Below are positions 2,094-32,267 of a stretch of DNA of 64,000 nucleotides, piece by piece (position 1 is the first letter of the stretch; every line of letters starts with the position of its first letter). Location: positions 1 through 64,000 of the IMG/VR virus record IMGVR_UViG_3300050120_000230. One strand, 5' to 3'. The translations under genes were made by a program, and so were the position numbers. Below the pieces are notes generated by a model. It had not been told where the DNA came from. It was given only the letters and a program-made list of their open reading frames with translations, and did not search any database.

Positions 2094-4036
2094 AGCCGTC
2101 GTTCAACCCCAAAGTCTTGCCGCGTGGCTATCGCCGCGACTCGCACATGGGTCGCGTGCGGGACAGCAACATCTATGTCGGCGTAGTCAAGCGCAACGAC
2201 GACGGACAACGCATGGGCCGTCTGGCCGTGTGGATTCCAGAAATCGGCGGCGATCCGAACAATCCGCAGAACTGGTTCATCGTCAGTTACGCGAGCCCGT
2301 TCGCCGGTGTGACGAACCCCAACGCTCTCGTCGAAGATGCCACGAACCTCGACGGCACCCAGCAGTCGTATGGCTTCTGGATGAATCCGCCGGACCTTGA
2401 GAACCAAGTTCTGGTGTGCTTCGCCAATGGCGACACCGCCTTGGGATTCTGGTTCGCCTGCCTCTATCAGCAGAACATGAACCACATGGTGCCCGGCATC
2501 GCGACCGGCACTCCGACCGAAGATGGCAACTACTGTTCCAGTCAGCCGCCGGTGGCGGAATACAACAAGTGGAGCAAAGAGAACCCAGACAAGCCGAAGA
2601 GGGCTGCCTACACACCTCTGGCCAATGGTCTATCCGAACAAGGTCTTTTCTCTGATCCTGAACGTGGCCCGGCCGATTCGTCTGCTCGCCGCGAAGCACC
2701 GTCGAAGGTCTACGGCTGGCTGACGCCGCGTGGCAATCAAGTCTACGTCGATGACAACCCGGCCAACGAGTTCATCCGTATGCGAACTCGTTCCGGCGCC
2801 CAAGTGCTGGTCAACGAAACGACGGGCTTCGTCTACATCAACTCGAAGAACGGCAACTCGTGGGTCGAGATTTCCGACAAGGGTGTGGACATCTATTCCA
2901 AGGGTGCAGTCAGCCTGCGCTCTGAAGGTTCGCTGAACCTGCACGCCGATGGCTCCCTGAACATCGAAGCCGATGGTAACCTGAACCTGCGCGCCGGAGG
3001 CAACCTGACCCTTCAGAGCGCCCACCATTCGCACTTCGCGGGCAACGGCGATCTCGTTCTCGATTTCGGTGGAACTGCCAGCACCAAGGCTGGCGGAAAC
3101 ATTTTGCTGGCGGCTACTGGCGCTGTGCGCTCTGGCGCCGGTGGCGACATCACGGCTTCGTCCGGTGGTTCGAACATCCGCTCCGCTTCGGTCATCTTCG
3201 ACAATGCTTCGACAGCGGCCCCGCCTGCGAACGCTCCGTCTGCCAAGGTTGAGCAGCCGCGCGATCTACCGGAAGTGAACGGTTCGGCTCCCTGCTACCA
3301 ACAGAGCACGCGTAAAACGATCACGCGCCGGATGCCGACGCATGAACCGTTCGTCAACCACCCGAAGGCTGGGGGCTCTGGCGATCAATCGAACAACCCG
3401 GACCTTAAGAAATCCGACGAATACGCTTCAGCGGCGGACGCCAATTCGGTCGCCAATTCGAGCACCGTTCCGAACGACGACAACACGAGCTTCACGGATG
3501 ACGACGTGTCGTGGCTGACGGTCTGCCTGCTCACCGAAGCCGGTGGTCTTGGCGATGACATGCTGGCCGCTGTTGGACAGGTAGTGATGAACCGTTCTTC
3601 AGTCGGCTTCGCAGGCAATGTGCGAAACGATGCGTGGTCGGGCATCAAGAAATACGTGCTGGCCTATGCCGCATTCTCGTTTTTCTGGTCATCCAATGGC
3701 CGTAGCCTCGACGTGGGCGGTGGCAAGCCTGCTCGCTCTGGTTCGCCGCCCCGCCTGACGATCCCGCCCGCATTGTTCGCGGCCGGTGAGAAGAAGGGCA
3801 TCGATAAGATCAAGTCGTCGCAGGGCTCAACCGAATGGAACCACTGCAAGCAGATCGCGACGCAGCTTCTCGCAGGCACCTACAACGCCAGCACGGCTGT
3901 GGCGCCGATCAAAGCCAACAAACGGTGCACGATGTATGTGAACGCTAGCACGGCTTCGCCGGTGTGGGCTGTGCCGAGCAAGTTCGTCACTCAGGTCGGC
4001 CATCCGCGTCTGTCACACAGTTTCTACCTGCAATAA
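2090..4036 (+). CDS. Baseplate central spike (gp5-like) with C-terminal SleB/Hydrolase_2-type cell wall hydrolase
   Basis: N-terminal OB-fold motif (GVVKRNDD..RMGRLAVWIP, SYGFW..PP), beta-helix repeats (GSLNLHADGSLNIEADGNLNLRAGG), PTHEPF, then LTVCLLTEAGG..AVGQVVMNR. Confidence 0.85.
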   Translation: MKPSFNPKVLPRGYRRDSHMGRVRDSNIYVGVVKRNDDGQRMGRLAVWIPEIGGDPNNPQNWFIVSYASPFAGVTNPNALVEDATNLDGTQQSYGFWMNPPDLENQVLVCFANGDTALGFWFACLYQQNMNHMVPGIATGTPTEDGNYCSSQPPVAEYNKWSKENPDKPKRAAYTPLANGLSEQGLFSDPERGPADSSARREAPSKVYGWLTPRGNQVYVDDNPANEFIRMRTRSGAQVLVNETTGFVYINSKNGNSWVEISDKGVDIYSKGAVSLRSEGSLNLHADGSLNIEADGNLNLRAGGNLTLQSAHHSHFAGNGDLVLDFGGTASTKAGGNILLAATGAVRSGAGGDITASSGGSNIRSASVIFDNASTAAPPANAPSAKVEQPRDLPEVNGSAPCYQQSTRKTITRRMPTHEPFVNHPKAGGSGDQSNNPDLKKSDEYASAADANSVANSSTVPNDDNTSFTDDDVSWLTVCLLTEAGGLGDDMLAAVGQVVMNRSSVGFAGNVRNDAWSGIKKYVLAYAAFSFFWSSNGRSLDVGGGKPARSGSPPRLTIPPALFAAGEKKGIDKIKSSQGSTEWNHCKQIATQLLAGTYNASTAVAPIKANKRCTMYVNASTASPVWAVPSKFVTQVGHPRLSHSFYLQ

Positions 4037-4048
4037 TCGACTCGGTAA

Positions 4049-4396
4049 TTGCGGTGCGGTATAAGCACTGTAGTGAAAATCTTCACCAATCATTCGGGGA
4101 CGACGCAGGATACGTTCAGTATCGGCAAGCGTGGGGTCGAGCTTATTCGTGGCTATGGTTCGCCACATCAGCACCATGCTCACGCTACGGTCGGCAGTCT
4201 CTACTTCCAGACCGAACTAGGTATCTTGTTGGTGAAACGCCCATCCGGTGAATGGGACGCCATGGCCACCCAAGCGTCAGTTCAGCTTTCGATGGTCATG
4301 GTCTCGCAGACCATCGAGCGATGCGTTCGCATGGCACTCTGGACCATGGCAGGACTGGTGGTCTTCGTGACGCTGATGCTCGTGTTTACTCGGTGA
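4049..4396 (+). CDS. Hypothetical protein with C-terminal transmembrane helix
   Basis: ORF follows gp5 and has a hydrophobic C-terminus; the start may be the GTG near 4073. Confidence 0.5.
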   Translation: MRCGISTVVKIFTNHSGTTQDTFSIGKRGVELIRGYGSPHQHHAHATVGSLYFQTELGILLVKRPSGEWDAMATQASVQLSMVMVSQTIERCVRMALWTMAGLVVFVTLMLVFTR

Positions 4397-5355: not shown

Positions 5356-5564
5356 CAGTTCACCTTGGGGAGGATTTGCGAGCCGTCTTCCGGCACGGGG
5401 ACGATTTGCAGGAGACCTTTGGCGTGCAGGCGGCCGAACATGCCGCCCGTGCCACCGCTCTCGGCCCACGTATCGGCGTCGATCTGCTGGACAGCGAAGG
5501 TCTGACCACGGCCAGCGGCGCCGAGGGCTACAGCGGCGATGAAGCCTTTGCGTTGACGAGCCAT
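5355..5564 (-). CDS. Hypothetical protein
   Basis: AGGAG SD and a TTGACG promoter-like sequence upstream. Confidence 0.6.
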   Translation of the reverse strand: MARQRKGFIAAVALGAAGRGQTFAVQQIDADTWAESGGTGGMFGRLHAKGLLQIVPVPEDGSQILPKVN

Positions 5565-5666
5565 GCGTGATCTCCTGTGCAGTTCAGAATGTCATTCTCT
5601 CATCAAAGTCGAATCCGTCAACAATACTTTAGTGCATGGGTCCATGCATTAGGCTACGGTGCGGAA

Positions 5667-5792
5667 ATGAGAACCAATTACCCCATCCCGCCCGCACCGA
5701 AGCCCGGCATGTCCGACCCCCGTTCGACTGGGCGGCCTACGCCGACTCGGATTCGCCGACCGCAAATGTCTGACCCTCGGAGCACGCGTTAA
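5667..5792 (+). CDS. Small Pro/Arg-rich peptide with duplicated MSDPRST
   Basis: The heptapeptide occurs twice with different synonymous codons. Confidence 0.45.
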   Translation: MRTNYPIPPAPKPGMSDPRSTGRPTPTRIRRPQMSDPRSTR

Positions 5793-6090
5793 GCTCGTCG
5801 AGGATGTCCTGAAAGTCGTTGTTCGTCCAATCGAGTGGTTGGTAGTAGCGAAGGTAATTGTTCGTCACGTCGAACCCACCACGGCGGGGCCAAGGGCGAA
5901 GGCTACACCCTTGAGCACTTCAAGGAGCTAAAGAGCCGCCCGCCGGGCCTGATGGCCGAGTTGGATCGCCTTCACAGAGTGTTTTCCACTCTGCGTCGGT
6001 TAGTCGCCAGAAATATCCGAACTGCCCAACGTATACGTATCTGCTCTGAGTCTGCTTGGGCTCGGTGTATCGCCTGCGTCTGCGTGTCAT
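5737..6090 (-). pseudogene. Gene disrupted by an internal 80-bp inversion (5887-5966)
   Basis: AGGAGG SD and ATG at 6090, in-frame TGA at 5920-5922 inside the segment. Flipping the segment gives a stop-free 117-aa ORF. Confidence 0.7.
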
Positions 6091-6187
6091 GAGAAAGTGC
6101 CTCCTACCTATAATGGGGTCGCGAGAAGGCCATTATGTGCAGGCCATTTTTCAACTTTCTCGGAGTGTGGATTTTTCGTCACAGTAT

Positions 6188-6203
6188 TTTTGGTTGACCA
6201 AAA
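6188..6203. promoter_or_regulatory. Palindromic TTGG-N4-CCAA site overlapping a TTGACC -35-like box
   Basis: TTTTGGTTGACCAAAA; related sites at 14666, 51204, 54666 and 60804. Confidence 0.5.
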
Positions 6204-6225
6204 TCTCGAAATCACTACAAAGGCG

Positions 6226-7260
6226 ATGATGAACAGTGTTGTCAAACCCGCGAAGTTTCTGATCGCTATAGTGACGCTTTGCTTCGCGACGATGGCGGCT
6301 GCTCAGAACACTCCGAGGGCTACAGCGTCACAAGGACAGTGGGCTCACTATTCGTCGGCTCAACCATTGATCGCCGTGGCGCCCACGCCAGAGGTCCCCA
6401 AGCCCGTTCCGGTGGTAGTTCCCGCACCTCACATCCAAAATCCCATCGAGCACGCGTTGCAAGTGGCCTTGGACGATTATCGCGCTGGCAAAACCAGTGA
6501 CGACGTGATCGCACGATATGGCGGAACACCATCCGCTTATGGCCACATGCTGGAATTGAACGTCGCCCGCGCACGGGCGCTGCCTTCGGTGTTCCCAGAA
6601 CGCTACGTCGTGGTGAACATCCCCTCGCAAACACTTGATCTTTACGTCGATGGCAAACGTGCCTTGACCATGCGGGTCATCACTGGTCGGCCGGATGCTC
6701 CTACGCCCACGATGGTGACCAACATCACCACGGCCATCTACAATCCCTACTGGAACGTCCCGTGGGAAATGGTGCGTGACACCTATTCGAAACGGGCCAT
6801 GGCCAACTCGCATTACCTGAAGTTGATGCACATGGAAGCACTCGACGGTTGGGGCGCGGACGCCAAGGTCATCCCAGAATCACAGGTTCCGTGGAAGGAC
6901 GTGGCGGCGGGGACGATCTACCAACGCGTTCGGCAGCGTCCGGGTGACGATAACATGATGGGCATCGTCAAGTTCGAGTTGGCGGACAACAGCAAGGGCA
7001 TCTATCTTCACGACACCCCGTTGCGGAAAAACTTCAACGGCACATGGGTTGTGCTTCACGCGATGAGTTCCGGTTGCATCCGTCTCTTCGACGCCAAGAC
7101 ACTCGCCAATGCCTTGATGGGAACGCAGCCCGCGTTTGCCGACACGGAACATCGCGTTCTGCTGACGAAGCCGGTGCCGATTTTCATCACCTATTTCACA
7201 GCGATGCCCAGTGAAACAGGATTGGTCTTCTACCATGACGGCTACGACGCCGATAAATAA
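6226..7260 (+). CDS. L,D-transpeptidase (YkuD domain, YcbB-like), secreted
   Basis: Signal peptide; VVVNIPSQTL, VITGRP..PTP, NPYWNVP, RQRPG..NMMGIVKF, catalytic IYLHDTP...SSGCIRL. Confidence 0.9.
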   Translation: MMNSVVKPAKFLIAIVTLCFATMAAAQNTPRATASQGQWAHYSSAQPLIAVAPTPEVPKPVPVVVPAPHIQNPIEHALQVALDDYRAGKTSDDVIARYGGTPSAYGHMLELNVARARALPSVFPERYVVVNIPSQTLDLYVDGKRALTMRVITGRPDAPTPTMVTNITTAIYNPYWNVPWEMVRDTYSKRAMANSHYLKLMHMEALDGWGADAKVIPESQVPWKDVAAGTIYQRVRQRPGDDNMMGIVKFELADNSKGIYLHDTPLRKNFNGTWVVLHAMSSGCIRLFDAKTLANALMGTQPAFADTEHRVLLTKPVPIFITYFTAMPSETGLVFYHDGYDADK

Positions 7261-7263: not shown

Positions 7264-7737
7264 GTGCGCGAATACATCGACATTCTGGCCGAAGCTCAGA
7301 GCCAAATCCCACCCGAGCTTGCTGCCCAAATCCTTTCAGACCGGCTTTGCAAGCACGGGGTGAAACTGGCGCCGAGCGCACGTCTGTGGCGTGGCGAGGG
7401 TTCTGAAGGCGGAAGCGGGTTCGCCACCTATGGCCGAGGGCTCTACTTCACCGCTGATCGCAAAGTCGCGGCCGAATATGCCGGAGACGATGGCGAGATC
7501 GTCGAAATCGCTCGGGCCTATCTTCCCGACAATGCGCTGCGTTTCGACACCACAAATGATTTCCAGATTTGGAAGCAGAGGGCTTACACGCTGCTGGGCT
7601 TCAGAGGCCCGCAGGAGTTCGCAGCCGCATACGATGATCTTGGCGTTTTCATCCGCACCCTTGATCCGACCATCGACGGCATCCAGATGTTCACGGGCAA
7701 AGACTCCGTCTTCGTCCTCTACGGAATGGACGAGTAA
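7264..7737 (+). CDS. ADP-ribosyltransferase-like late protein with N-terminal tag
   Basis: LWRGE...YGRGLYFTADRKVAAEYA resembles the ART core; TAAATA 4 nt upstream. Confidence 0.55.
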   Translation: MREYIDILAEAQSQIPPELAAQILSDRLCKHGVKLAPSARLWRGEGSEGGSGFATYGRGLYFTADRKVAAEYAGDDGEIVEIARAYLPDNALRFDTTNDFQIWKQRAYTLLGFRGPQEFAAAYDDLGVFIRTLDPTIDGIQMFTGKDSVFVLYGMDE

Positions 7738-12514: not shown

Positions 12515-12902
12515 AAAACTTCAGCGCACAAAATTCGCGATCTATGATCCCACGACGAAGCTCTTCGTTTCGAAGAAACGTGGCTATCTCCAAAACATTT
12601 GGACTGACCAGTTCGAAAACATTCAGAGCTATGCCATTCCGAGCAACGCACTCGAAATACAGCAGTGGGCGAAGTCCATGGCGCCTGCGGCCGAGATCAT
12701 CGAATTGACGATCACACTGGAATGGACCACTGCAAAGTCCGACTTCTCAATCGAAGACACGTCACAGTTCAAGAAGCACAAGGCGTTCTACGACAAGTTC
12801 CTTCCGGCGGTTGAGAAGGACGTGGACTCGCTGAGTGACGCCGACTGGAAGCGTTTCAAAAACGCTCGATATTTCCTTCAACGGGCAAAGGTCATCCCAT
12901 GA
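12507..12902 (+). CDS. Hypothetical protein
   Basis: Overlap-coupled ORF. Confidence 0.65.
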   Translation: MTEKLQRTKFAIYDPTTKLFVSKKRGYLQNIWTDQFENIQSYAIPSNALEIQQWAKSMAPAAEIIELTITLEWTTAKSDFSIEDTSQFKKHKAFYDKFLPAVEKDVDSLSDADWKRFKNARYFLQRAKVIP

Positions 12903-13276
12903 GTTTCGCATCCGTGGCCTGTCCCGAGACCGATAAACCGTGTTCGGCTATCTCATGCGTAAATGCGGGAATTCCACTCTCGACGTGCATTCACCGTGGT
13001 GTCGAGCAGTTCGTCGGCCGCTCGCACGGTGATCCCCGGACGGAGATCATCTGGAAGAGCCTGCCCTACTATCCGCACGGCTTCATCGTGCCCGCGCTGA
13101 ACACACAGAATACGCCAACAGCGATCCTGAACTGGCTGGACGAAAACTGCGAGTTCGGCGACTGGGTGCGCTATTTCGGGACGTTCCGTTTCAAGTCGAA
13201 ACAAACGTCCGACTCGTTTCGTCTCTGGCTTCTCGAACAAGCTCGCCCTGACTTGAAGAAAGTTCTCGCAGCCTGA
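12899..13276 (+). CDS. Hypothetical protein (WL...F.F.....F.L family)
   Basis: NWLDENC...FRFKSKQTSDSFRLW. Confidence 0.6.
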   Translation: MSFASVACPETDKPCSAISCVNAGIPLSTCIHRGVEQFVGRSHGDPRTEIIWKSLPYYPHGFIVPALNTQNTPTAILNWLDENCEFGDWVRYFGTFRFKSKQTSDSFRLWLLEQARPDLKKVLAA

Positions 13277-13420
13277 TGTTCATGCGCTGGCGCCTTCCCA
13301 AGCGGTTCTGGGGTCATCCTGACAACTGGAACGATGCGGCGTGGGACGAATACATGGATCGCGGCATGAGCGGTCACTGGTATGATCGGCTCGTATGCTG
13401 GTGGAGAGGGTGGGAAAAGA

Positions 13421-13630
13421 GTGTCTAGGCCAGAACTGCATCTGCAAGTCGTTCGCGAAGCGGTTGTCGAGAAACTGTCGCTGGGCGGCGAAGTAGTATC
13501 CGACGCGGGCGTTGATCGGATCGTCGATCAAGTGATGACAATGCTGGAAAGCAAAGCTATCGGGACCATTGCCGAGTTGCACGCCGGTATTGACGCAGCC
13601 ATCGCGAAAGAACTCGGGCGCGGCAACTGA
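13421..13630 (+). CDS. Hypothetical protein
   Basis: GTG start in a co-oriented cluster. Confidence 0.5.
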   Translation: MSRPELHLQVVREAVVEKLSLGGEVVSDAGVDRIVDQVMTMLESKAIGTIAELHAGIDAAIAKELGRGN

Positions 13631-13686
13631 TATTGTTGACAGCATGGAAACCTGTGAGATCATCTGATCTCACATAGGAGCCCTGC

Positions 13687-13956
13687 ATGACCAAATCCGT
13701 TTCTTACATGCCGAGCGTTTTCTGGGTCGCCACGGTTCACCGCGACTCCGAGACGATTCCGATGAGCCTCTGTTCGATGATTTCTGATCTTTGGGGCCGA
13801 GACATCGAAACGGTGAAAACGGACGTGGCCGAGCGGATCGTCATTCTCCGTAAGCGCCACCGCGCGGTGGAAATCGCCCATCATGAAGAAATCTCGTTCG
13901 GTGTTGCCGAACGGCGTGCGGAGCAGGAAGCCAACACGAAGGTCGAATTCGCATGA
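13687..13956 (+). CDS. Hypothetical protein
   Basis: TTGACA promoter-like sequence and AGGAG SD upstream. Confidence 0.65.
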   Translation: MTKSVSYMPSVFWVATVHRDSETIPMSLCSMISDLWGRDIETVKTDVAERIVILRKRHRAVEIAHHEEISFGVAERRAEQEANTKVEFA

Positions 13957-14243
13957 ATACCTGCAACATTGAGCAAGGCGCCGAAGGTCCGGTGTTCGCC
14001 TGTGCCTATGAGAACATGGGCAAGGCGCTCTATGAGACTTCGAGCCGACTGACGCCGCGCATCGTGGTCGCCGACAAGATCGGCGACGGTAGTGCTGGTG
14101 TCGAGATCGCCATCGAGTATTCGGAAAGGTCCGATCACACCAACAAGCACATCGTCTTGGCACCGGTTTTCACCCCCGCCATGGCCCGGCAATTCGCAGC
14201 GCGCCTGATGGAAGCTGCCAATGAAGCTGAACAGGTGGTCTGA
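13953..14243 (+). CDS. Hypothetical protein
   Basis: ATGA-coupled ORF. Confidence 0.6.
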   Translation: MNTCNIEQGAEGPVFACAYENMGKALYETSSRLTPRIVVADKIGDGSAGVEIAIEYSERSDHTNKHIVLAPVFTPAMARQFAARLMEAANEAEQVV

Positions 14244-14656
14244 TGATCGTATGCGTAGAAGAATGCACCGAAACTAAGATCGGCCAAACCCCCGGCACGC
14301 CCGAGGGCTGGCGTGACTCGCGCGACTATGCGCGAGACTCTTCCACTAGTTTCATCCGCGTTGATCGGCTTGCCGCCAACAACCCGCTGCGTGTGGCTAT
14401 CGAACACGCCATTGCATGGCAACGGGAGATGGGTGACGAGCGGATGAACTACGACTATGACGGCGAACTGCCGTATCCCTATTCGTCTTCAATTTACGCG
14501 AACACCAACGGCGCGAGCGACTCCGAGGTGTTCGTGGAAGACCACGAGTTTCCCCTGATGGTGGAAGCCAGCATTCGTCTCTGCATCGAGGAAGATGGGG
14601 CAGTCGTTCGCCAGTTGCGCGAAGCTGACGTTCGCAAGTGCATCGAGAACGGTTGA
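14243..14656 (+). CDS. Hypothetical protein
   Basis: TGATG-coupled ORF. Confidence 0.6.
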   Translation: MIVCVEECTETKIGQTPGTPEGWRDSRDYARDSSTSFIRVDRLAANNPLRVAIEHAIAWQREMGDERMNYDYDGELPYPYSSSIYANTNGASDSEVFVEDHEFPLMVEASIRLCIEEDGAVVRQLREADVRKCIENG

Positions 14657-14706
14657 CTTAATCTCTTTGGTCAACCATTCTCCCATAGCTTAGCTTGGGG
14701 GTTCAA

Positions 14707-14979
14707 ATGGCTAAATGGCGGGATATTTTCAAAGGCATCGGAACATGTATTCTACTGCTTTTCGCTTTCCTGATACTTCGGTCGTGTGATCCAGACGTAG
14801 AGATCAAGCGGGCACAGGCACGAGCCGATGATGCATATGCCCTAGCGGACGAAGCACGAGTAAAGCAAGAAGACGCTGAAAATCGGTTGGCTGATACTGA
14901 GACAAAGCTAAAGGATGCAGATGACCGATTAACGGCTATCGAGCAAAAAATCTGCGGAGGGAGCACCTGTGATGAGTAA
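14707..14979 (+). CDS. Membrane-anchored coiled-coil protein
   Basis: N-terminal TM segment followed by a heptad-rich region. Confidence 0.6.
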   Translation: MAKWRDIFKGIGTCILLLFAFLILRSCDPDVEIKRAQARADDAYALADEARVKQEDAENRLADTETKLKDADDRLTAIEQKICGGSTCDE

Positions 14980-15502
14980 TCGGATGTTCAAGACAATTCT
15001 CATCGCCGGTGCGGTTCTGATGCTCGCGGCCCCAGTCCATGCGTTAGAACGCGATGGCTTCCGTGTCGGAATGACGTTTGACGAGGCCCAAAAAACTGTG
15101 CCGCTTGGCTACTCTCTCAAGCTTCTTCCGAATGCCACTTCTATTTTCCAAGCCTACATTCCCATAAATGATAGGCAAGACGTGTTTGGTAGCCTCGCGT
15201 TTTGTCGTGGCCATTTGATTTCCTATGCCAGCCCAAATATTAACGTGGACGGCGAATACATCAACGAAGTTGAGAGGGCGATTTCTATCTATGGCTCCCA
15301 GCCCAGAACAAAAGTAATTAGTTCTTCGTGGTCTGGTAGAGGCGGCGGCACGATCCAAACTATGTCGTTGACTTGGACTCTGGTTTCCGGCGAGCAATAT
15401 GAAATTGATCTACTTCCCCAAGGCCACGATTCATATGGTAACGTTAGTCACATAGCGTCGGCCTTCGTCCGCATCGCTGCACAAAATACCCGTTGTAGCT
15501 GA
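14972..15502 (+). CDS. Secreted/periplasmic hypothetical protein
   Basis: Signal peptide ending PVHA; GFRVGMTFDEA; lower GC than neighbours. Confidence 0.65.
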   Translation: MSNRMFKTILIAGAVLMLAAPVHALERDGFRVGMTFDEAQKTVPLGYSLKLLPNATSIFQAYIPINDRQDVFGSLAFCRGHLISYASPNINVDGEYINEVERAISIYGSQPRTKVISSSWSGRGGGTIQTMSLTWTLVSGEQYEIDLLPQGHDSYGNVSHIASAFVRIAAQNTRCS

Positions 15503-15566
15503 AAATATTGACCACGGTTGGGCGAACAGGTAACTTGAGAGCATAGCTCATCAAGGATATATTCAA

Positions 15567-15698
15567 ATGACTACCTCTAAAAAAGATGCCAGCAAAGCTG
15601 GCAAAATCCTGCGCGAAAGCAAGGATAAAGACATGAAGAGCGTCGCGGCTTCTGATTTGGCCCAGACGAAACGAAATACCACGAAGAAAAAGAAATGA
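15567..15698 (+). CDS. Small basic protein, not in ORF track
   Basis: AAGGA SD; MTTSKKDASKAGKILRESKDKDMKSVAASDLAQTKRNTTKKKK. Confidence 0.6.
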   Translation: MTTSKKDASKAGKILRESKDKDMKSVAASDLAQTKRNTTKKKK

Positions 15699-15952
15699 TC
15701 GGTTCGCGCATCACAACTCTCTTGGGTGTGGGTTCCATCCAAAAGATTAACGGAAGCATCGCAACCGTGAAATTGGACGAAGCCATGAAAGTCATGGCGA
15801 CCCAAGAAATCTTTGACACGGTTGATGTGAATACCGCCGAAGAACCTCGTGTGGGAATTTATATGGCCGTGCTACCGGTCTTAAATAATCCGCCGCCCGG
15901 TGACCTTGGCGATCAACTCTATCATAAGGCCAGTCTCCGGCGTCTCGCGTAA
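15695..15952 (+). CDS. Hypothetical protein
   Basis: ATGA-coupled ORF. Confidence 0.5.
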   Translation: MIGSRITTLLGVGSIQKINGSIATVKLDEAMKVMATQEIFDTVDVNTAEEPRVGIYMAVLPVLNNPPPGDLGDQLYHKASLRRLA

Positions 15953-15978
15953 GGAAACCCCTTTTCATAAATACTCGT

Positions 15979-16473
15979 ATGCGCGAGTTCATGAATATCG
16001 TCAACGAAGGTCTGGCCGGAGAGGACGAGATGCTCAGTGAGGCAACACCGCGAAACTTCGGAAAATGGGCGGCGAGCATGGCCGGAGCAGCCGCGCTGGC
16101 GGCGGGGCTCAGTGGCTGCTCTGACACAACGTCTGGCAGTCCTACACCGGTTGTGAGCAAGGCAGATTGCGAGAGTGATGGCGGTGCCGGGTGCGAAACG
16201 GAAGCCGACAGTCCAGAAGGCGCCGAGGCTATCGACTATAAGAACGAGTGGAACAGGCGCCTTTGCCTTGCACAAGGTGGTGACTGGGACTCAAGTTCCA
16301 TGATACCCACCAAAATTGCCGATCACCCGCTCCGTGGGATGTGTAGCAATATAAGACAAAGAGATGCTTGTGCCGATGTTGGGGCCTGTCCCGAACTGGA
16401 TGATAAGGGCATGAAACAATGGGACAGGGATTGGTGGAAAGCGCACCCGAATCTCATCCAACCGAAACCGTGA
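15979..16473 (+). CDS. Late protein with N-terminal tag, internal lipobox and Cys-rich body
   Basis: TAAATA 5 nt upstream; MREFMNIVNE...LSEA...AAALAAGLSGC. Confidence 0.65.
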   Translation: MREFMNIVNEGLAGEDEMLSEATPRNFGKWAASMAGAAALAAGLSGCSDTTSGSPTPVVSKADCESDGGAGCETEADSPEGAEAIDYKNEWNRRLCLAQGGDWDSSSMIPTKIADHPLRGMCSNIRQRDACADVGACPELDDKGMKQWDRDWWKAHPNLIQPKP

Positions 16474-16514
16474 CCAATTTCCGATAATGCATCATGTGCG
16501 CGTAAGGGATCGCG

Positions 16515-16718
16515 ATGGAACCTAAACTGACCGTGAAATTCTACGTTTCGGCATATGACGAAAGCGGCTACGGGGACAATCGATCAAAAGATTTCGACAG
16601 TGGTGACGCCGCCGTAGCGTATGCCGAATCTTTGGAGGCCCGGTTCCACGCGTCGGTCTATAAGCGGATCACGATGGAGCCCATGAGCATCCAAATTTGG
16701 CCGATCCGCGAACCTTGA
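16515..16718 (+). CDS. Hypothetical protein
   Basis: AAGGGA SD; short ORF. Confidence 0.55.
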   Translation: MEPKLTVKFYVSAYDESGYGDNRSKDFDSGDAAVAYAESLEARFHASVYKRITMEPMSIQIWPIREP

Positions 16719-17025
16719 TGTCCACTGCGCGAGCTTCTCGCGCATCGTATGCATTCCATCGCATCCGGGCGATCACGATGTTCGCGTCGGTGACTGATCC
16801 AAGTTCGAAATGCTGGGTCACTGGTTGGTTCGGCCAATGCACAGCGTGGCCCAATCTCTGCAACTTATAAACCTCGTTGCGTTCCGGCATAGGCTTGGCA
16901 TCGAACTCCTGCCAATCGGATTGGTAGAACTGCGAGCCGAGATAGTGCCAACCGGGATGATGCTCGTCCAACCAGTCGTGAACCTCTGCCGTTTGACGGT
17001 AGAGGATCGGAAACGTCATAATCAT
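16669..17025 (-). CDS. Hypothetical protein
   Basis: Coupled to the upstream minus-strand ORF. Confidence 0.5.
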   Translation of the reverse strand: MIMTFPILYRQTAEVHDWLDEHHPGWHYLGSQFYQSDWQEFDAKPMPERNEVYKLQRLGHAVHWPNQPVTQHFELGSVTDANIVIARMRWNAYDAREARAVDIKVRGSAKFGCSWAPS

Positions 17026-17183
17026 TTGGCGCGCAGACGTTCGATCTCGTCGGCCGCTTCGTCCAGTAGATCGGCGATACGATCCCGCTGGCCTTCCTGA
17101 ACGGATTTTCGACTCGGTATTTGGCGCCTGATTTCCGCACGTTTGCGGAGCCGGTAGACCAGATCGGTTTCATCCTCAATCAT
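17022..17183 (-). CDS. Small hypothetical phage protein, not in ORF track
   Basis: MIEDETDLVYRLRKRAEIRRQIPSRKSVQEGQRDRIADLLDEAADEIERLRAK; ATGA overlaps at both ends. Confidence 0.7.
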   Translation of the reverse strand: MIEDETDLVYRLRKRAEIRRQIPSRKSVQEGQRDRIADLLDEAADEIERLRAK

Positions 17184-17707
17184 TTCGTTCCACGATTTGG
17201 CTCAAGGCCAACCCACGTCAAAATTGTTTCCAGCCCGGCCCAGAAGCCGATCCCGTCGAGGATCGGGTTCAGGATGTTCGTCAACGGGCAGTAGCGACGA
17301 TCCTCATGCCTGTGATGACCATTGTGGTGGTTCGGAGACTGGATGATCCCGATCTCCTGCAACATCAAAAATCTGCCCGGCCGGTGCGTGAGAACATGCA
17401 CTTCGTTCAACAGCAGGCCACCCAAAGTGGCGAAGAACCATACGAACGACGGACCCGCGAGACCAAACCAAACGGCGCTCACGATGCTGACGGCAACCCA
17501 CGTTTCGATATTGCGATAGATCAGAGAGTTCCCGAGGAAAGACTGTGGATCAGAATGATGTAGGCGATTGGCCTTGATGACCATCGGCCCGATCAGCGGC
17601 ATGTCTTCTCGTCCCACACGGTCTTCCCACCAGTGAAAAACGCCACCCGCAAAATCTGCGATGAGCCAACCGAGCAATGATTGGCCAAAAATTCGGAAAT
17701 CGTCCAT
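17180..17707 (-). CDS. CarF/TMEM189 (Kua-B) family lipid desaturase
   Basis: ADFAGGVFHWWED, RLHH, NEVHVLTH, LQEIGIIQSPNHHNGHH..YC histidine pattern; TM helices. Confidence 0.85.
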   Translation of the reverse strand: MDDFRIFGQSLLGWLIADFAGGVFHWWEDRVGREDMPLIGPMVIKANRLHHSDPQSFLGNSLIYRNIETWVAVSIVSAVWFGLAGPSFVWFFATLGGLLLNEVHVLTHRPGRFLMLQEIGIIQSPNHHNGHHRHEDRRYCPLTNILNPILDGIGFWAGLETILTWVGLEPNRGTK

Positions 17708-17723
17708 GTCTCCTATTTATGGG

Positions 17724-18062
17724 TCAGACCATCTTTAACATCAGAGCGAACTTCTCGCGGGCTGCGACAAGCTCAGCCGAGAGTCCTTTGATCTGTTCGA
17801 CCAATTCTTCGGCTTCTTCCAGAGTTTCGACCCGTTTCACGACATGCTTCATCTCGACTTCGTATTGGCCGGGGTTTCGAGATTGAAGGACCGCCGGATG
17901 AATAGCGCGCGTCCAAGTGTATTGCGGAACAGTGACCAGCCCTCGTCCCAAGGACGCCAGACTTCGGCCGATATAATTGCCGTTGTTCGATTCCCGCCAA
18001 AAGCTCCGAACCTCGAAGACATTCCACACGCCGTTTTCGTCGGAGACGAGGACGTAGCTCAC
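17724..18062 (-). CDS. Hypothetical protein
   Basis: GTGA-coupled ORF. Confidence 0.55.
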   Translation of the reverse strand: MSYVLVSDENGVWNVFEVRSFWRESNNGNYIGRSLASLGRGLVTVPQYTWTRAIHPAVLQSRNPGQYEVEMKHVVKRVETLEEAEELVEQIKGLSAELVAAREKFALMLKMV

Positions 18063-18247
18063 TGGTAGTCTTCCGGGTAGAGATGCATCACCGCGCCGTT
18101 GTAGCGCGACAGCCACGTCATGAGCGCCTTATCCATGGCTACGGCACGAACAGAGTTGCCATGATGCAAGGCAACTCGCTTGGCGCGGCCGTAACGGCGC
18201 CATTTGCGTTCGCACTTTCGCATAAACTTGTAGAGCTTGTGATCCAT
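18059..18247 (-). CDS. Hypothetical protein
   Basis: Short ORF in a minus-strand cluster. Confidence 0.5.
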   Translation of the reverse strand: MDHKLYKFMRKCERKWRRYGRAKRVALHHGNSVRAVAMDKALMTWLSRYNGAVMHLYPEDYQ

Positions 18248-18265
18248 TGGACCACCGTATCGTAA

Positions 18266-18529
18266 TCAGATGCCGAAGAACATTTTGAAAAGCGTCGCTG
18301 CTTCCTGATCCTTGAAGAACGCGCACTTCATGCTCGGGTGCGGGGCCTCGTTCGGAGCACAGATCGTATACCATCCATCGCCTCGCCCGTTTTCACAGAC
18401 GCCGACGTTCTCTCGCAACCATTTGAAGCCTTCTCTACTCAGCCAATGGCCTTCGAGATGATCCGGTGATATTGCAACCCGGTAGGGATGATACCCGGAA
18501 CTGTCTTTCTTTGTCGAAGTAGGATGCAT
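18266..18529 (-). CDS. Hypothetical protein (WL...F.D..A..FK family)
   Basis: KWLRENVG...AFFKDQEAATLFKMFF. Confidence 0.6.
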   Translation of the reverse strand: MHPTSTKKDSSGYHPYRVAISPDHLEGHWLSREGFKWLRENVGVCENGRGDGWYTICAPNEAPHPSMKCAFFKDQEAATLFKMFFGI

Positions 18530-18566
18530 CCCACATTATGCCCTCTAATGCTGCATGGGTCCAACA

Positions 18567-18950
18567 ATGACGTTCTATCACGCCACCTATCGACATCGTC
18601 TGGATTCCATCCGCCGACATGGGCTGACGCCCACGGTGGCTGATCCCAATTTCCCCGGCGCGGAGCCCGGCGTCTATTTGGCGTCCGATCCGATGATTCC
18701 GGTGGCGTTTTTGCTCGAACACAGCATCGAAAACGCAAATGAGAAGGATAATCCGAGCCAAATCGTCGAAAACTTCGTGGTTATCGTCATCGACGACTCG
18801 CGGCTGGACAAACGGAAGCTAGGTCCCGACCCACAACTGTCAGAGCAAGAAGGCTTGTGGTGCTATCGCGGTGTGATCGATGTGACGAACATGCCAATAT
18901 TGGATATCGCGACCTTGCAACTATCCCACTTGCCTGCCGACCACAGTTGA
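18567..18950 (+). CDS. ART-fold protein (Tpt1/KptA- or DUF952-like)
   Basis: FYHAT...LDSIRRHGL.P...GVYLA motif. Confidence 0.6.
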   Translation: MTFYHATYRHRLDSIRRHGLTPTVADPNFPGAEPGVYLASDPMIPVAFLLEHSIENANEKDNPSQIVENFVVIVIDDSRLDKRKLGPDPQLSEQEGLWCYRGVIDVTNMPILDIATLQLSHLPADHS

Positions 18951-18980
18951 GCTACGGATTGGGTGAGCAGGAGAACCCTC

Positions 18981-19382
18981 ATGAAGACTTTCTACACCTC
19001 GAACTATGAACGCAGCAGCACGAGCCCCCTCGCCGTGTCCATCAGCAACCCCGCCGATGTGCCCGCGACCTACGAAGGCGCCCGCGATGCCGACCTGTCG
19101 CCGACCGACGACCTTCTGGAACGCTACCACGCCCGCGACGTGAGCCATGAAGGCTACGCCGCCGCCTACATCGCGCTGCTCGGCGAGCGCGGCATCACGC
19201 CGCAAAGCATCGCCGACAAGTTCGAGGAAGGCACGATCTTCGTGTGCTACGACTACGAGGACGGCGCCAGCGGTTCGGAAGATGCCGACACCGGCACGGC
19301 CGACGACCTGAGCATCTGCCACCGGGTGTTCCTGTCCAAGTGGCTGAACGATTCCGGCGTGGTCACGATCTCCGAAATCTAA
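18981..19382 (+). CDS. DUF488-like protein
   Basis: LSPTDDLL..Y, FVCY and CHRVFLSKWL motifs; AGGAG SD. Confidence 0.65.
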   Translation: MKTFYTSNYERSSTSPLAVSISNPADVPATYEGARDADLSPTDDLLERYHARDVSHEGYAAAYIALLGERGITPQSIADKFEEGTIFVCYDYEDGASGSEDADTGTADDLSICHRVFLSKWLNDSGVVTISEI

Positions 19383-19486
19383 CGCTCCGAGAGGGCTCTG
19401 TGAGGCTGTCAGGACGTTTGTTCTGAGAATAGCACCACGGAGCCCCCGGTAGTGCTAAGAGCCGCCCACGGCCCGGAAAATGGCCT

Positions 19487-20131
19487 CTACGCGGCCATTG
19501 ACGCGCGCTTGGCGCCTGTCATCAGATCGGCGATCTGTTTCGTGAGAACCGGATCGAGCACGACTATGCTGCCGTCTGCCTTTTGCATGAAGTTCGACAG
19601 GCCGAGATCGAAGTGGAAATCTTCGGGATCGGGGTCCTTCTTCTTCACGAACTGCATCAAGTCGTAGAGGATGTGGCCCTCGAAGTCGCCGAACGAGCGC
19701 ACGAACGCTTGCAGCGACATTTTCTCCATGAAGAAACCGCGTTTCTCGGAGTGGGTCAGGAACTTGTGGTAAATTTGGTTGAAGGTCGTGATGATCTTCT
19801 TGACCATGCGCTCGTTGTCTTGATCGAGCCGTTCGTATTTCGGCATCTCGAAGATGTAGATCGGGAGCGCCTTGAACTTTGCGATCTTGTGCGAGCCTGA
19901 CTGGTATTCTCCCAGACGCTTTGCGATACCGAGGTGATCCAGCCATTCACCCTTCATCTTGTCGCGAGTGAGCAGGATGACGTTGCCGTCACCTTTGTCC
20001 AGCGCCAGACTGCTGACGCCTTGGCCAAGCACCCGCAATCCCTTGAACTGCTCTGGTACTTCGTCCTGCTGAACGCCGACCCATTGATGTTCCGGCGCCT
20101 CGCGGAGAATGGCGAAATCGCTGATCTTCAT
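19487..20131 (-). CDS. Protein kinase-like protein
   Basis: Gly loop VLGQGVSSLA, catalytic HFDLGLSNFM, VVLDP; start MKISDFAILRE lies just after the upstream stop. Confidence 0.65.
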   Translation of the reverse strand: MKISDFAILREAPEHQWVGVQQDEVPEQFKGLRVLGQGVSSLALDKGDGNVILLTRDKMKGEWLDHLGIAKRLGEYQSGSHKIAKFKALPIYIFEMPKYERLDQDNERMVKKIITTFNQIYHKFLTHSEKRGFFMEKMSLQAFVRSFGDFEGHILYDLMQFVKKKDPDPEDFHFDLGLSNFMQKADGSIVVLDPVLTKQIADLMTGAKRASMAA

Positions 20132-20135: not shown

Positions 20136-20702
20136 TCAGGGGCGGGGAATACGGGGCGACGCGGGGGCTGCTTGCGGAGTTTGCTGCTGTTGAGCCGCAG
20201 CGCGAGCGGCTGCACGTTCTGCATCGGCCTTGCGCTGCTCGATAGCGTCCCATGCTTCTTCTTCGGCTTCGTCTTCGCTGTGCCATGCACCCGACCACGT
20301 CTCTTCACCGGTCAGACGGAAGTAGTAGCCTTCGCCAGCACGATCTTCTTCACCGTCCGGGTCATCGTAGAAGAACTCGATCTCGAAAGGATCGTCTTCC
20401 ATCTTGGAAGGCCAGCCGGTGTTGGATTCGGTCATGACGGGCTCGATGTCGTCGAGGGTGAGGCGTGCAACATATTGCTCGCGACCATCTTCCTGTTCGT
20501 CATCGAATGCAACGAACACGTCAGGAGCATAGTCACTGCCGTGGTGACTGGGTTCGGAGCCGACCATGACACCTTCGCGGCCGGTCGCAGTTTCGCGAAC
20601 ACGCGCACCGTCTTCAGGGGCATCGTATTCGGTGTGGTGCACTTCGCCGTTGGGGTAACGAAGCTCGTTCGCTTCGTTGATGATGTCGATATACTTACGC
20701 AT
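20136..20702 (-). CDS. Acidic late protein with N-terminal tag
   Basis: AAGGAG SD; starts MRKYIDIINEA. Confidence 0.65.
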   Translation of the reverse strand: MRKYIDIINEANELRYPNGEVHHTEYDAPEDGARVRETATGREGVMVGSEPSHHGSDYAPDVFVAFDDEQEDGREQYVARLTLDDIEPVMTESNTGWPSKMEDDPFEIEFFYDDPDGEEDRAGEGYYFRLTGEETWSGAWHSEDEAEEEAWDAIEQRKADAERAAARAAAQQQQTPQAAPASPRIPRP

Positions 20703-29453: not shown

Positions 29454-32267
29454 TTACGTTTTCGTCAACGACGAGTTGAACGTATCGAGGACCGCACTAC
29501 CATCCGAGGTATTGATGACCGTGAATACAACGCTGGTGGTATGGTAACCACCGAAACGGAAGAGCACGACATCGCCGTTGACCACGTCGAAGCTTACATT
29601 AGTGCCACCTTGGATGATGCTCGCCGTTGAGAGTGTGCCGTTGATGTAAACCGCCAGATTTTCCCCGGCAGCCAACGTGCGATTACACGCAATATTCAAC
29701 GTGATGTGGGTGTTGATCCCAGTGATGCCTTGGGTGTTCGTGTTGCCACCAATGGACACGCCGGGGATGAAGCTATCGTCAGTCGGGCCGGTCGCGGAAG
29801 TGTCCGTCCAGTTCACTGGATCGGGTGTGCGGTCAAACTGGTGCGTTCCGGTAATCAGGCCGCCAGAGGTCATCGAGAAACCGGCCGGAAGAGCCGTGTT
29901 CGCAAAGAAGGTCAACGGATCGCCTTCGGGGTCGTGTGCGACCAATTGGAAGCTATTCGTATCGCCGGGGAAACCGGTCAGGGCCGGAATATCACCTGCG
30001 GGAGTGTCCCACACTGGCGGTAGATTGGCGGCTGCCGCGATGACGTTCATCTGGAACGAACGGTCAGTGGTTTTCGCACCGTCGCTCGCCGTGACCGAGA
30101 ACACAGTGTTCGTTGCGATATTCGCGATGTTGCCCGTGATGAGACCGCCGCCTGTCAGAGACAAACCGACCGGAAGCGTGGTCGAGTTGGCCAACGAATA
30201 GGTGACCGGCTTACCCTCTGGATCGTGAGCCAAGAGTTGTTGGTGAGCGGCAGTGTTGCCGACAAACGTTCCGAGCGATCCGGCGGGCGTGTCCCAAACC
30301 GGAGGAGCATCGACATGCTGAATCGTCAGATTGAAGTCACGCGATACGGTGTATTGACCATCCGACGCATTGACCGTGAAATCGTAAACCGAGAGATCGT
30401 TCTGTTGAAGAAGCGTGCCACGCATCTCGTAGATGGAGTTCGAATACGGCGGGCCATCCTTACGGCGGGTGAGATCGGAATAGGGTGGGCCACCATTGTC
30501 GAAGGCGGCGCGGTTCAAACGAATGCGGCCACGGATTGCGACGTAGGGAGAAGGGTCGGGGAGCGTGAACTCTGCGCTGATCGTATACCATTGGTTCAGC
30601 GTCCACAGCGACGTGTCGAAGAGATCGTAGCCGACATTATTCGGATCAGAGACATACCCGGCGCCGGAGCGTTGGCCTTGAATGGTGATGACGCCGTTGG
30701 CGAAGAAACAGTCGAACGCCGGGCGAACGAAACCCTTCTGTGAGTTGTCGTCTTGAGTCTTGCGAATGGAATATTTGATGACGTAGCGCGCACCCGGCAT
30801 CGGGGTGGTTTCTTGGTTGTCGGAGACGAATGTCGTCTGTGCAGCTTTCGACCGGAAAACGTGCGTGCCGTCGCTATCGACAGCCAGATAAGAAGGCCCG
30901 GCAAGGGTGGAATTAAGGCCAGTCGGATCGACGATATACCAAACTGTGTTGGCGTTCGCGATCTCTTCGTCACCAACAGAGAAAGCCTGTGGAATGCCGG
31001 TGAGCACACCGGTGTTTGAGACCGACGAAATTGACATGCCGATAACGTCAATGCCCGACAATGCGATACCGTTTGCGGACACGTTGGAGATCGAATAGGT
31101 CAACGGGTCTTGGTCTACGTCCGTCGCAATGAACGTGATCGGAGACATGGACGTGTTCTCAAGGAACAGACCGACGTTGCCTGTCGCCGGAGACTGGAAG
31201 ATCGGGGGAACGTTGACGTTCTTGACGCGCAGACTGAACGTGCGCGGAACATCGAACTCACCATCGTAGGCGAACACTTGGAACGGGAAATCTCGGTGCA
31301 TGTTGCGCGCCGATCCCACAAAGGGACTTTCCGGCACGATCTGGTCGGCGACAGGCGGAAGGCTGCCGGTCAGCACGCCGTTCGCGTTCAGGGCGAGCGT
31401 CGAGTTGGCGATCTCGCCATTGAACAGCGAACCGTTGGCGCGGAACACGAGTGGTGCATTGACTTCCGGGTTGGGGTTGAAGTCGATCTCGGGGTCGTCC
31501 ACGCCGAGGACTTTGTAGCCCACAGCATTGTTTCCCACGGCCGGGTTGCCGAACGAGTCAACGGCTTCAATCGACGTGATGCCAGAGACACGCAGCGTGC
31601 GAATATCACCGGTGGTGATGCTGTGCAGTGCAGGCGTGCCAGCCGGGGACGTGATCTTGAAATACGCCCCGCCTTCGTAGGATGCCCCGTAGTCCACCGG
31701 GCTGCTGTGAAAGGTATTGACCGAGGCAATGATATCTTGCGTCGTCTGGGCGATGGAATTGTTGAACGGAATCGTCGCGGAGATCAGGATACCGTTGGCC
31801 ACCAGCGTCGCGTTGCCGGTGGTTCCGGTGAACATCCACAGGTCGGTGACCGTCGCTTGCGCGATGTCTTGACCCTCGAACATTTCAAGGATCAGGCCAC
31901 CACTGGAAACAGACCAGACCGGCGGCAAGTTGATGTGTTTGACAGTGATCGAGAACGGCTGGTCCTTGATGTTCACACCGTCGAAGGCGCCGACGTTGAA
32001 ATACCAAGTGTGGTCGCCTTTGAGCGTTTCGCCGGTGTCGTAATGCTTGAGGTCCAGAGTTCCCGTGATCGTGCCTTCGGACGGATCAAGGAAAGCGCCA
32101 TCAGGCAGGCTGCCACTCGTCAACAGATAGGTGACATCCTGCATTTCAGGGTCACGAGCGGACAGCCGGGCGAGGAACGAATCACCTTCGTAGCAGACAC
32201 CATTGGTCATATCCGGCCGGTGCTTGCTCTGGATTTCGTTCAGTAGAGGGAAAGCATTGTCGATCAT
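29454..32267 (-). CDS. Virion protein with tandem putative Ig (He_PIG-like) repeats
   Basis: Repeated PPVW...A.DPEG.P.TY...LP.GLSL...G.ITG...F.V.ASDG..R.F units. Confidence 0.8.
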   Translation of the reverse strand: MIDNAFPLLNEIQSKHRPDMTNGVCYEGDSFLARLSARDPEMQDVTYLLTSGSLPDGAFLDPSEGTITGTLDLKHYDTGETLKGDHTWYFNVGAFDGVNIKDQPFSITVKHINLPPVWSVSSGGLILEMFEGQDIAQATVTDLWMFTGTTGNATLVANGILISATIPFNNSIAQTTQDIIASVNTFHSSPVDYGASYEGGAYFKITSPAGTPALHSITTGDIRTLRVSGITSIEAVDSFGNPAVGNNAVGYKVLGVDDPEIDFNPNPEVNAPLVFRANGSLFNGEIANSTLALNANGVLTGSLPPVADQIVPESPFVGSARNMHRDFPFQVFAYDGEFDVPRTFSLRVKNVNVPPIFQSPATGNVGLFLENTSMSPITFIATDVDQDPLTYSISNVSANGIALSGIDVIGMSISSVSNTGVLTGIPQAFSVGDEEIANANTVWYIVDPTGLNSTLAGPSYLAVDSDGTHVFRSKAAQTTFVSDNQETTPMPGARYVIKYSIRKTQDDNSQKGFVRPAFDCFFANGVITIQGQRSGAGYVSDPNNVGYDLFDTSLWTLNQWYTISAEFTLPDPSPYVAIRGRIRLNRAAFDNGGPPYSDLTRRKDGPPYSNSIYEMRGTLLQQNDLSVYDFTVNASDGQYTVSRDFNLTIQHVDAPPVWDTPAGSLGTFVGNTAAHQQLLAHDPEGKPVTYSLANSTTLPVGLSLTGGGLITGNIANIATNTVFSVTASDGAKTTDRSFQMNVIAAAANLPPVWDTPAGDIPALTGFPGDTNSFQLVAHDPEGDPLTFFANTALPAGFSMTSGGLITGTHQFDRTPDPVNWTDTSATGPTDDSFIPGVSIGGNTNTQGITGINTHITLNIACNRTLAAGENLAVYINGTLSTASIIQGGTNVSFDVVNGDVVLFRFGGYHTTSVVFTVINTSDGSAVLDTFNSSLTKT

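Follow-up and report, generated by a model that had tools for sequence, protein, structure and literature searches.

The 164-residue open reading frame (ORF) at 15979-16473 (+) of the IMG/VR virus record IMGVR_UViG_3300050120_000230 is, with high confidence, a late gene, probably read from a leaderless mRNA, for a predicted prelipoprotein that lies behind the standard 'MR' leader peptide of its phage. For the gene as a whole we tentatively favour one reading, which we hold to be somewhat short of an even chance. This is that it is a late accessory gene of a huge myovirus of the T4 superfamily, and that its product would be packaged by means of the leader as a masked prelipoprotein. The evidence consists of a promoter-like element at a fixed distance from the start codon, a leader shared with many unrelated genes, a likeness to the capsid-targeting propeptides of T4, and a candidate protease site at the edge of the signal peptide.

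The analysed stretch is the first 64 kb of the record (64,000 nucleotides, hereafter the window). Positions refer to the window unless a genome is named, and the standard genetic code was used throughout. The source record (G000) has 415,409 bp and a completeness estimate of 72% by CheckV. T4-type baseplate, tail-fibre and virion proteins in the record mark it as a huge myovirus, and by its baseplate protein the nearest cultured relatives are Sinorhizobium phage Phosso and Agrobacterium phage Atu_ph07. A megablast search of the window from 12 to 20 kb against cultured phages gave no match. The comparison genome G001 is a complete relative of 578,292 bp with terminal repeats, which shares ~70% nucleotide identity with the source record across ~99 kb.

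The initial annotation had described an acidic N-terminus of 21 residues in front of a basic region, a hydrophobic core and a lipobox. This was confirmed from the sequence, and the peptide is exactly as quoted there. The precursor has four parts, namely the acidic N-terminus, a basic stretch with an Ala/Gly-rich core, the lipobox L-S-G-C and a Cys-rich domain (Table 1). Residues 1-21 hold one Arg and six Glu/Asp, for a net charge of -5. Residues 30-43 are rich in Ala, Gly and Leu, and the mean Kyte-Doolittle value of W30-L44 is ~1.4 (counted by hand). L44-S45-G46-C47 follows the uncharged hydrophobic stretch A37-G43 and matches the PROSITE-style lipobox pattern [LVI][ASTVI][GAS]-C. The mature part comprises 118 aa with eight Cys. 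A twin-arginine (Tat) signal was ruled out, as R-R is absent.

Table 1. Positions in the window of the predicted lipoprotein gene, its parts, and two further leader genes.
Feature	Position	Strand	Basis or remark
Lipoprotein precursor ORF	15979-16473	+	164 aa
TAAATA, T4-late-promoter-like, 5 nt ahead of the first ATG (15979)	15968..15973	+	
Leader decapeptide MREFMNIVNE, residues 1-10, class A 'MR' leader	15979..16008	+	ORF-start comparison
Acidic linker, residues 11-21, ending L-S-E21, a candidate gp21-type protease site	16009..16041	+	sequence
Shine-Dalgarno-like GGAGAGGA, 4 nt, in-frame ATG 16030 (Met18); possible internal start	16018..16032	+	
Lipoprotein-type signal peptide, residues 22-46: n-region with R25 and K29, Ala/Gly-rich h-region, L-S-G	16042..16116	+	sequence
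Codon of Cys47, predicted lipidated +1 Cys; residue +2 is Ser	16117..16119	+	lipobox pattern match
Mature region: low-complexity Ser/Thr/Pro/acidic tether, Cys-rich domain from about residue 84	16120..16470	+	
Leader gene MREYIDILAE, GTG start, TAAATA 4 nt upstream	7264..7737	+	without Pfam match
Leader gene MRKYIDIINE, AAGGAG ahead in place of TAAATA	20136..20702	-	

The TAAATA element in front of the ORF belongs to a genome-wide arrangement. The genome has 140 TAAATA sites, and at 48 of them an ATG or GTG that opens an ORF follows after exactly 4-5 nt, compared with 0-7 at each other spacing between 0 and 40 nt. In G001 the element stands 4-5 nt ahead of the start codon in 51 ORFs. Within the window such starts are found at 54774(+), 49987(-), 47880(-), 39751(-), 29446(-), 28653(-), 15979(+) and 7264(+), and genes for tail-fibre and virion proteins are also preceded by TAAATA. 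The T4-type late promoter TATAAATA has the same core and likewise lies upstream of structural genes, and ATAAATA is found ahead of structural genes in Rak2-like jumbo phages (PMC5259590). In T4 alt, gene 22 and gene 24 the late promoter lies ~20-30 nt upstream with a Shine-Dalgarno site in between, whereas the distance of 4-5 nt from the start seen here is too short for a 5' untranslated region or a Shine-Dalgarno site to fit in. The geometry of the T4 late promoter would put the transcription start at or next to the A of the ATG. Spacing and geometry taken together therefore argue for leaderless or nearly leaderless late mRNAs, and the counts point to wholesale use of such mRNAs in this phage lineage. 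A homologue of T4 gp55 was not found by tblastn in G000 or G001.

Residues 1-10 of the ORF are shared with many other genes. When all ORF starts of the genome were scored against them, a class A motif, M-R-[DE]-[FYWL]-[IM]-[ND]-[LI]-[VI]-x-E, was found to open unrelated ORFs, and a larger class B, M-R-x-x-E-[IL]-hydrophobic-x-E, was seen among the TAAATA-led genes. The leader family, of the general form M-R-x-aromatic-I/M-N/D/E-hydrophobic-hydrophobic-x-E, has ~29 carriers in the source phage and ~31 in G001, and most leader genes have TAAATA 4-5 nt before the start codon. The two genomes hold 100 ORFs of the form TAAATA-N4-5-start; 48 begin with M-R, and 45 of the 48 fit class A or B. The tripeptide [LI]-x-E ends at residues 7-12 in 37 of these 45 leaders and in 10 of the 55 other TAAATA-led ORFs, a comparison that is partly circular. 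A scan of the genome with a position-specific scoring matrix of the leader gave 13 ORF starts at 16 bits or more. Four segments that are not ORF starts fell in the same range, three of them 2-3 codons past an upstream ATG, and everything else scored at most 14.6 bits. The extension is thus not a product of chance.

The leader appears to be selected as a peptide. Its wobble positions vary whereas its amino acids are conserved (for Arg2, two genes even use AGA or AGG), and this freedom at third positions indicates selection on the peptide and not on the RNA. Two members of the family have a Shine-Dalgarno site instead of TAAATA, so the leader is not a by-product of the promoter, and from the AAGGAG-led gene at 20136..20702 it follows that the leader is not tied to the leaderless arrangement. 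A pair of weak paralogues (E 0.003) differs in the leader, which is lacking at 18555-18950 (+) and present as an MR leader at G000 152724-153485 (-); the leader is therefore an add-on module of ~11-16 residues. Acidic linkers follow it in several other family members as well. On these grounds, TAAATA at the family's fixed spacing and residues 1-10 that belong to the shared leader, the first ATG (15979) is in our reading the real start, and the extension is a translated module and not a miscalled start.

The family reaches far beyond the two genomes. It is present in more than 130 other viral contigs. The DNA pattern of TAAATA followed by M-R-E/D-F-I/M-N/K was found in 22 other viral contigs with a GC content of 36-59%, and TAAATA followed by M-R-x-x-E-I in at least 117 stretches, many of them on contigs of 300-600 kb. 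We found no description of the leader family or of the coupling of TAAATA to start codons in the literature, which is not proof of novelty.

The proteins behind the leader are diverse. Pfam and PHROG searches assigned carriers to ART-PolyVal, ADPrib_exo_Tox, Tpt1-like protein, GNAT acetyltransferase and T7 gp0.7-like kinase families, all kinds that are typical of host-takeover enzymes injected by phages, and a virion structural protein family and a SleB-type cell-wall hydrolase are also among them. The paralogue pair has an N-terminal core 'F-Y-H-x-T ... H-G-L' as in ADP-ribosyltransferase/Tpt1-like folds, and Y-H-G-T or Y-R-G-D motifs occur in many leader-bearing proteins; ADP-ribosyltransferase-like effectors may therefore have undergone a large expansion. 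Several leader-bearing proteins are ADP-ribosyltransferases, like the packaged and injected T4 Alt, though the lipoprotein is no enzyme of this kind. In BLASTP, T4 Alt showed no significant similarity to any of the leader-bearing proteins (best E 0.023). Host-takeover enzymes under a late promoter would make most sense if packaged for the next infection, like T4 Alt.

The closest known parallel is offered by the internal proteins of T4, whose propeptides, like the MR leaders, are a short shared leader (10-19 residues) on unrelated proteins. The T-even internal proteins have only this leader in common (2025 paper, PMC12373910). In NC_000866 the T4 leaders read MKTYQEFIAE (IPII and IPIII), MELITELFDE (Alt) and MAKINELLRE (gp24). 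A gapless comparison of MREFMNIVNE with MKTYQEFIAE pairs M with M, R with K, F with Y at position 4, I with F at 7, V with I at 8, and E with E at 10. The T4 and MR leaders thus share Met and a basic residue at 1-2, an aromatic residue at 4, hydrophobic residues at 7 and 8 and Glu at 10, followed by L/I-x-E, while the leaders of Alt and gp24 share the build x-x-E-hydrophobic-hydrophobic-x-E with class B. In T4, a stretch as short as the first 10 residues of IPIII is enough to direct a protein to the capsid. Within the capsid-targeting sequence, targeting depends on residues 4 and 7 and processing on residues 8 and 10 (PMC9026906). The T4 prohead protease gp21 cleaves after L/I-x-E, and Alt is expressed late and trimmed by gp21 (PMC9026906). 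L19-S20-E21 of the ORF fits this rule, and its 21-residue propeptide ending in L-S-E parallels the 19-residue propeptide of T4 IPI, which ends in I-T-E (NC_000866).

When 308 ATG-ORF candidates from 41 kb of T4 were compared with a pattern M-x(2-4)-[ED]-hydrophobic-hydrophobic-x-E, it matched IPII, IPIII, Alt and gp24 and no others, and in G000 it matched 11 of 4842 candidates, 8 of which are MR leaders; the pattern was designed after both sets had been seen and its weight is therefore supportive and not independent. There are also differences from T4. The carriers number dozens per genome here and three in T4. Most MR leaders open late mRNAs that are probably leaderless, in contrast to the ip genes of T4 with their Shine-Dalgarno sites. 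Some of the proteins behind the MR leaders have export or membrane signals, and such cargo is not known for T4.

A prohead protease of the gp21 type (PF03420, Peptidase S77) was not found in the 72%-complete source record, because the contig breaks exactly where G001 has its head module, as judged by synteny. All three of the complete or near-complete leader-bearing relatives tested (G001, G002 and G003) encode one. In G001 a scaffold protein adjoins the gp21-type protease (G001 333863-334501), and the gp23-type capsid protein has L-L-E immediately ahead of its conserved core. Directly upstream of the protease, at G001 332742-333743 (+), lies an extremely acidic protein of 333 aa without PHROG match. 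It opens with the leader-like M-R-S-I-L-E-Q and may be a counterpart of the T4 core proteins gp67/gp68.

The best reading of the MR leader is a T4-like propeptide that targets its protein to the capsid and is trimmed there by the prohead protease; in our judgement the chances of this are about even. The initial annotation had proposed a pro-peptide cleaved in the capsid after LSE. This proposal has gained a translated and shared leader of T4-propeptide build, a site that fits L/I-x-E, and a protease with scaffold in near relatives; a statistical homology to the T4 leaders it has not gained.

The leader might instead act at the protein level outside capsid targeting, as a tag for a phage Clp, another chaperone or a translocase, or, in a variant, as a timing device that keeps signal-bearing proteins cytoplasmic until it is cleaved off by a protease late in infection. 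The phage does encode ClpP (G000 406512-407051 (+), PF00574, E 1.6e-78), and an ORF at G000 393844-395163 (+) looks ClpX-like by its N-terminal zinc-finger motif, noted by eye. The MR motif shows no obvious fit to the N-terminal tags of ClpX. Atu_ph07 and other relatives of this group are reported to have several Clp proteins (PMC6102473), and a role of Clp ATPases in the translocation of proteins packaged in the head has been proposed (PMC7824862). About half of the TAAATA-led late genes have the leader, a large share if all of them encode capsid cargo. Against this stands the build shared with IPII, IPIII, Alt and gp24 together with the [LI]-x-E ending, which are better explained by prohead processing, and we regard a role outside capsid targeting as very unlikely.

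How the N-terminus would affect export can be judged from the positional rules of PROSITE entry PS51257, by which the Cys lies ~15-35 residues from the N-terminus and a Lys or Arg lies near the N-terminus. The form starting at Met1 falls outside these rules, with Cys at 47 and a net charge of -3 in the n-region. The form starting at Met18 comes close to them (Cys at 30, first basic residue the 8th). The form cleaved after E21, with Ala22 as its N-terminus, has Cys at 26 and Arg at 4 and is the sole form that lies within both rules.

A comparable design is found in the SleB-type cell-wall hydrolase with an MR leader at G000 102294-102932 (+), which has an orthologue at G001 406984 (+). In both genomes the order is leader, short acidic linker ending in I-D-E or L-D-E, R-K, and an Ala/Gly-rich hydrophobic segment. 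The orthologue in G001 bears the leader and lacks any internal Met, which leaves the leader form as its only product. A third case is a protein of contig L140, with leader, L-E-E, R-D-K and a hydrophobic segment. In every case of a leader plus a hydrophobic segment the candidate cut site directly adjoins the basic n-region, which is exactly what the unmasking model of the initial annotation predicts. The hydrolase can be compared with signal-anchor-release (SAR) endolysins, as it likewise has a weakly hydrophobic, Ala/Gly-rich N-terminal segment after basic residues. SAR domains, however, stand at the very N-terminus, whereas in this hydrolase a 16-residue acidic leader comes first. The catalytic domain of the hydrolase gave matches to annotated phage endolysins. 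A second SleB-type enzyme of G001, at 95449-95985 (+), has a Shine-Dalgarno site and an ordinary signal peptide and is more likely to be the endolysin. Members of the T4-lysozyme, SLT and Amidase_2 families were found in neither G000 nor G001.

The part behind the leader has relatives of its own. An exhaustive profile search and a follow-up profile word search gave three relatives of the mature domain at 35-46% identity, which shows the ORF to be a real gene. In the corresponding position there is a type-I signal peptide in P0002, V-A-A-C in P0003 and L-A-G-C in P0005, and the signal-peptide region of the ORF aligns with the lipobox region of P0003. The export signal is thus genuine by homology, since the relatives carry a lipobox or a type-I signal peptide. 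The N-terminal extension is absent in all three. A search with residues 1-47 against 5.8 billion proteins found no similar N-terminus besides the ORF itself, and a word search and a related-locus search with the ORF returned its own sequence only. An AlphaFold2 model of the mature domain reached a pLDDT (predicted local distance difference test) of 50 on a four-sequence alignment. No Pfam or PHROG family was found for the ORF at E up to 0.01, and the protein atlas gave no usable match.

The initial annotation had suggested superinfection exclusion as an example of a function. In favour, the gene of P0002 begins at the stop codon of an HTH_3 repressor-like gene on a prophage-like contig (L005). 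Similarity to a known exclusion protein was absent from the Pfam, PHROG (E up to 0.01) and protein atlas results; the PADLOC library was not searched. T5 Llp and Cor of phi80/N15 are small phage envelope lipoproteins for exclusion or receptor masking, which are made early or from a prophage and have plain signal peptides. The ORF likewise specifies a small phage-encoded lipoprotein, and the place of P0002 directly after the repressor-like gene is typical of an exclusion gene, but the ORF differs in its late promoter and leader and matches no family. An exclusion function is speculation at this point. Contig L005 also encodes an IS605 OrfB/Cas12f-like TnpB; the genes noted on it lie at 3616-4391 and 5403-6476.

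The mechanism that we tentatively prefer, packaging of a masked prelipoprotein, would run as follows. Transcription from the TAAATA late promoter would begin at the first AUG or right beside it, and translation from Met1 would give the four-part precursor, with a 10-residue MR leader, an 11-residue acidic linker to L-S-E, the signal peptide and the Cys-rich exported domain. The MR leader would play the part in this lineage that the capsid-targeting sequence plays in T4, and would attach the precursor to the prohead's scaffold core. As long as the acidic extension is attached (net charge -5, Cys at 47), the weakly hydrophobic signal would remain a poor substrate for Sec. A gp21-type prohead protease would cut after Glu, at V-N-E10 and/or L-S-E21, and the cut at E21 would leave a textbook prelipoprotein signal with Arg at 4 and Cys at 26. 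The trimmed protein would be ejected with the DNA and arrive unfolded, and in the newly infected cell it would be exported, lipidated and oxidised and would then act on the envelope. We infer the cleavage sites, the ejection and the envelope function from the features described above, and the complete chain, in which export and lipidation of the trimmed prelipoprotein wait until after its ejection into the next host, is rather unlikely to hold in full.

Several points weigh against this mechanism. A matrix built on the leader only did not rank the T4 internal proteins or Alt first, and homology to the T4 capsid-targeting sequence is unproven, the likeness being one of shared build. The other candidate site, V-N-E10, has Val at P3 and not Leu or Ile. 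The head module is missing from the source record. Neither Atu_ph07 nor Phosso shows an enrichment of TAAATA-N4-5-ATG, so the system has not been seen in a cultured phage. We know of no precedent for an ejected protein that is exported by Sec. In ~2.2 Mb of related phage DNA the leader and a lipobox are combined in this ORF alone, and the sole case could be an accident of cassette capture. Finally, the Shine-Dalgarno-like motif with ATG 16030 could yield a normal prelipoprotein in the producer cell.

The last two points bear on the alternative of an ordinary late lipoprotein that is exported in the producer cell, either from ATG 16030 or as the Met1 form with a long n-region. Such a protein might have a late role, for example in masking receptors against loss of progeny on debris or in excluding other phages, and the leader would have arrived with a mobile late-promoter cassette and be merely tolerated. 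The initial annotation had itself pointed to the use of an internal start as evidence against unmasking, and a candidate does exist in ATG 16030 behind GGAGAGGA, which may serve as a start, alone or alongside Met1. The motif stands 4 nt before this ATG, motifs of its kind precede only 3.7% of 2113 internal ATGs in the genome, and AGGAG is enriched 11-fold before unambiguous starts, from which it follows that Shine-Dalgarno-led initiation is used in this genome. In the Met18 form the n-region would be normal, at a net charge of +1, and the Cys would stand at 30. All relatives of the mature domain are plain exported proteins without the leader, and the gene lies in a hypervariable accessory island without a counterpart in G001. 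On the other hand, ribosomes on a leaderless mRNA would meet Met1 before any other start. A Shine-Dalgarno-like string is also what codons for Gly-Glu-Asp-Glu produce, so the motif may have arisen with them, and acidic linkers follow the leader elsewhere in the family. The design of leader plus hydrophobic segment is conserved in the SleB-type protein, which lacks an internal start in G001, and L-S-E directly borders the n-region. We regard export from the producer cell as unlikely, yet it is the main rival of the packaging mechanism.

If the leader is a capsid-targeting signal, the N-terminal pattern together with TAAATA would identify the injected repertoire of this clade, at ~30 proteins per genome. 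The clade would be one of uncultured phages of 300-600 kb, and the list of carriers would be a catalogue of candidate host-takeover and anti-defence effectors. A signal peptide unmasked by a protease would be a new way to place a viral protein in the envelope of the next host at entry, and the 'expression-packaging-processing' idea from T4 would be extended to exported cargo. In the widest form of this proposal, huge phages of the T4 superfamily may use the conserved MR leader to load their heads with effectors that form a large, rapidly evolving set. Some of these would have export or membrane signals that are silenced by the leader and armed by the prohead protease. Sec, Lgt and LspA of the next host would then install a virion-delivered prelipoprotein and a membrane-targeted cell-wall hydrolase before phage gene expression. 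This generalisation we consider quite unlikely. Separately, the coupling of TAAATA to start codons points to the use of leaderless late mRNAs on a large scale in these phages.

The surroundings of the gene differ sharply between the two genomes. Fifteen ORFs (7264-7737 and those at 12.9-20.7 kb) have no tblastn match in G001, so G001 offers no orthologue of the lipoprotein in which conservation of the extension could be judged. The region 12900-20000 is flanked by conserved tail modules (65-79% nucleotide identity), and the unmatched ORFs between them therefore mark a hypervariable accessory island. Upstream of the lipoprotein gene, 14695-14979 (+) encodes an inner-membrane-spanin-like protein of 94 aa and overlaps the start of 14969-15502 (+), which encodes a 177-aa protein with an ordinary signal peptide. 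Together with the lipoprotein gene these two form a small cluster of envelope-directed genes.

The neighbour at 14695-14979 raised the question whether the lipoprotein could be the outer-membrane half of a two-part spanin, the complex by which phages breach the outer membrane at lysis. The lipobox and the late expression would suit this, and the proposed partner has an N-terminal membrane segment, a coiled coil, C-terminal cysteines and a weak match to phrog_5328. Three ORFs, however, lie between 14695-14979 and 15979, so that the genes are neither embedded, overlapping nor adjoining. P0002 has a type-I signal peptide and its gene stands beside a repressor-like gene and not in a lysis cassette, and the mature part, with eight Cys in its 118 aa, does not resemble a spanin. 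Because of the gene order and the signals of the relatives the spanin reading was rejected, and we regard it as extremely improbable.

Two other genes of the window were noted. The ORF at 17180-17707 (-), with TAAATA 6 nt before its ATG, encodes a lipid desaturase-domain protein (PF10520, E 2.4e-30; also FA_hydroxylase) and is a possible auxiliary membrane-lipid gene. The ORF at 32264-39751 (-) has TAAATA 4 nt before its ATG, is conserved in G001 and encodes 2495 aa, presumably a giant tail or fibre protein.

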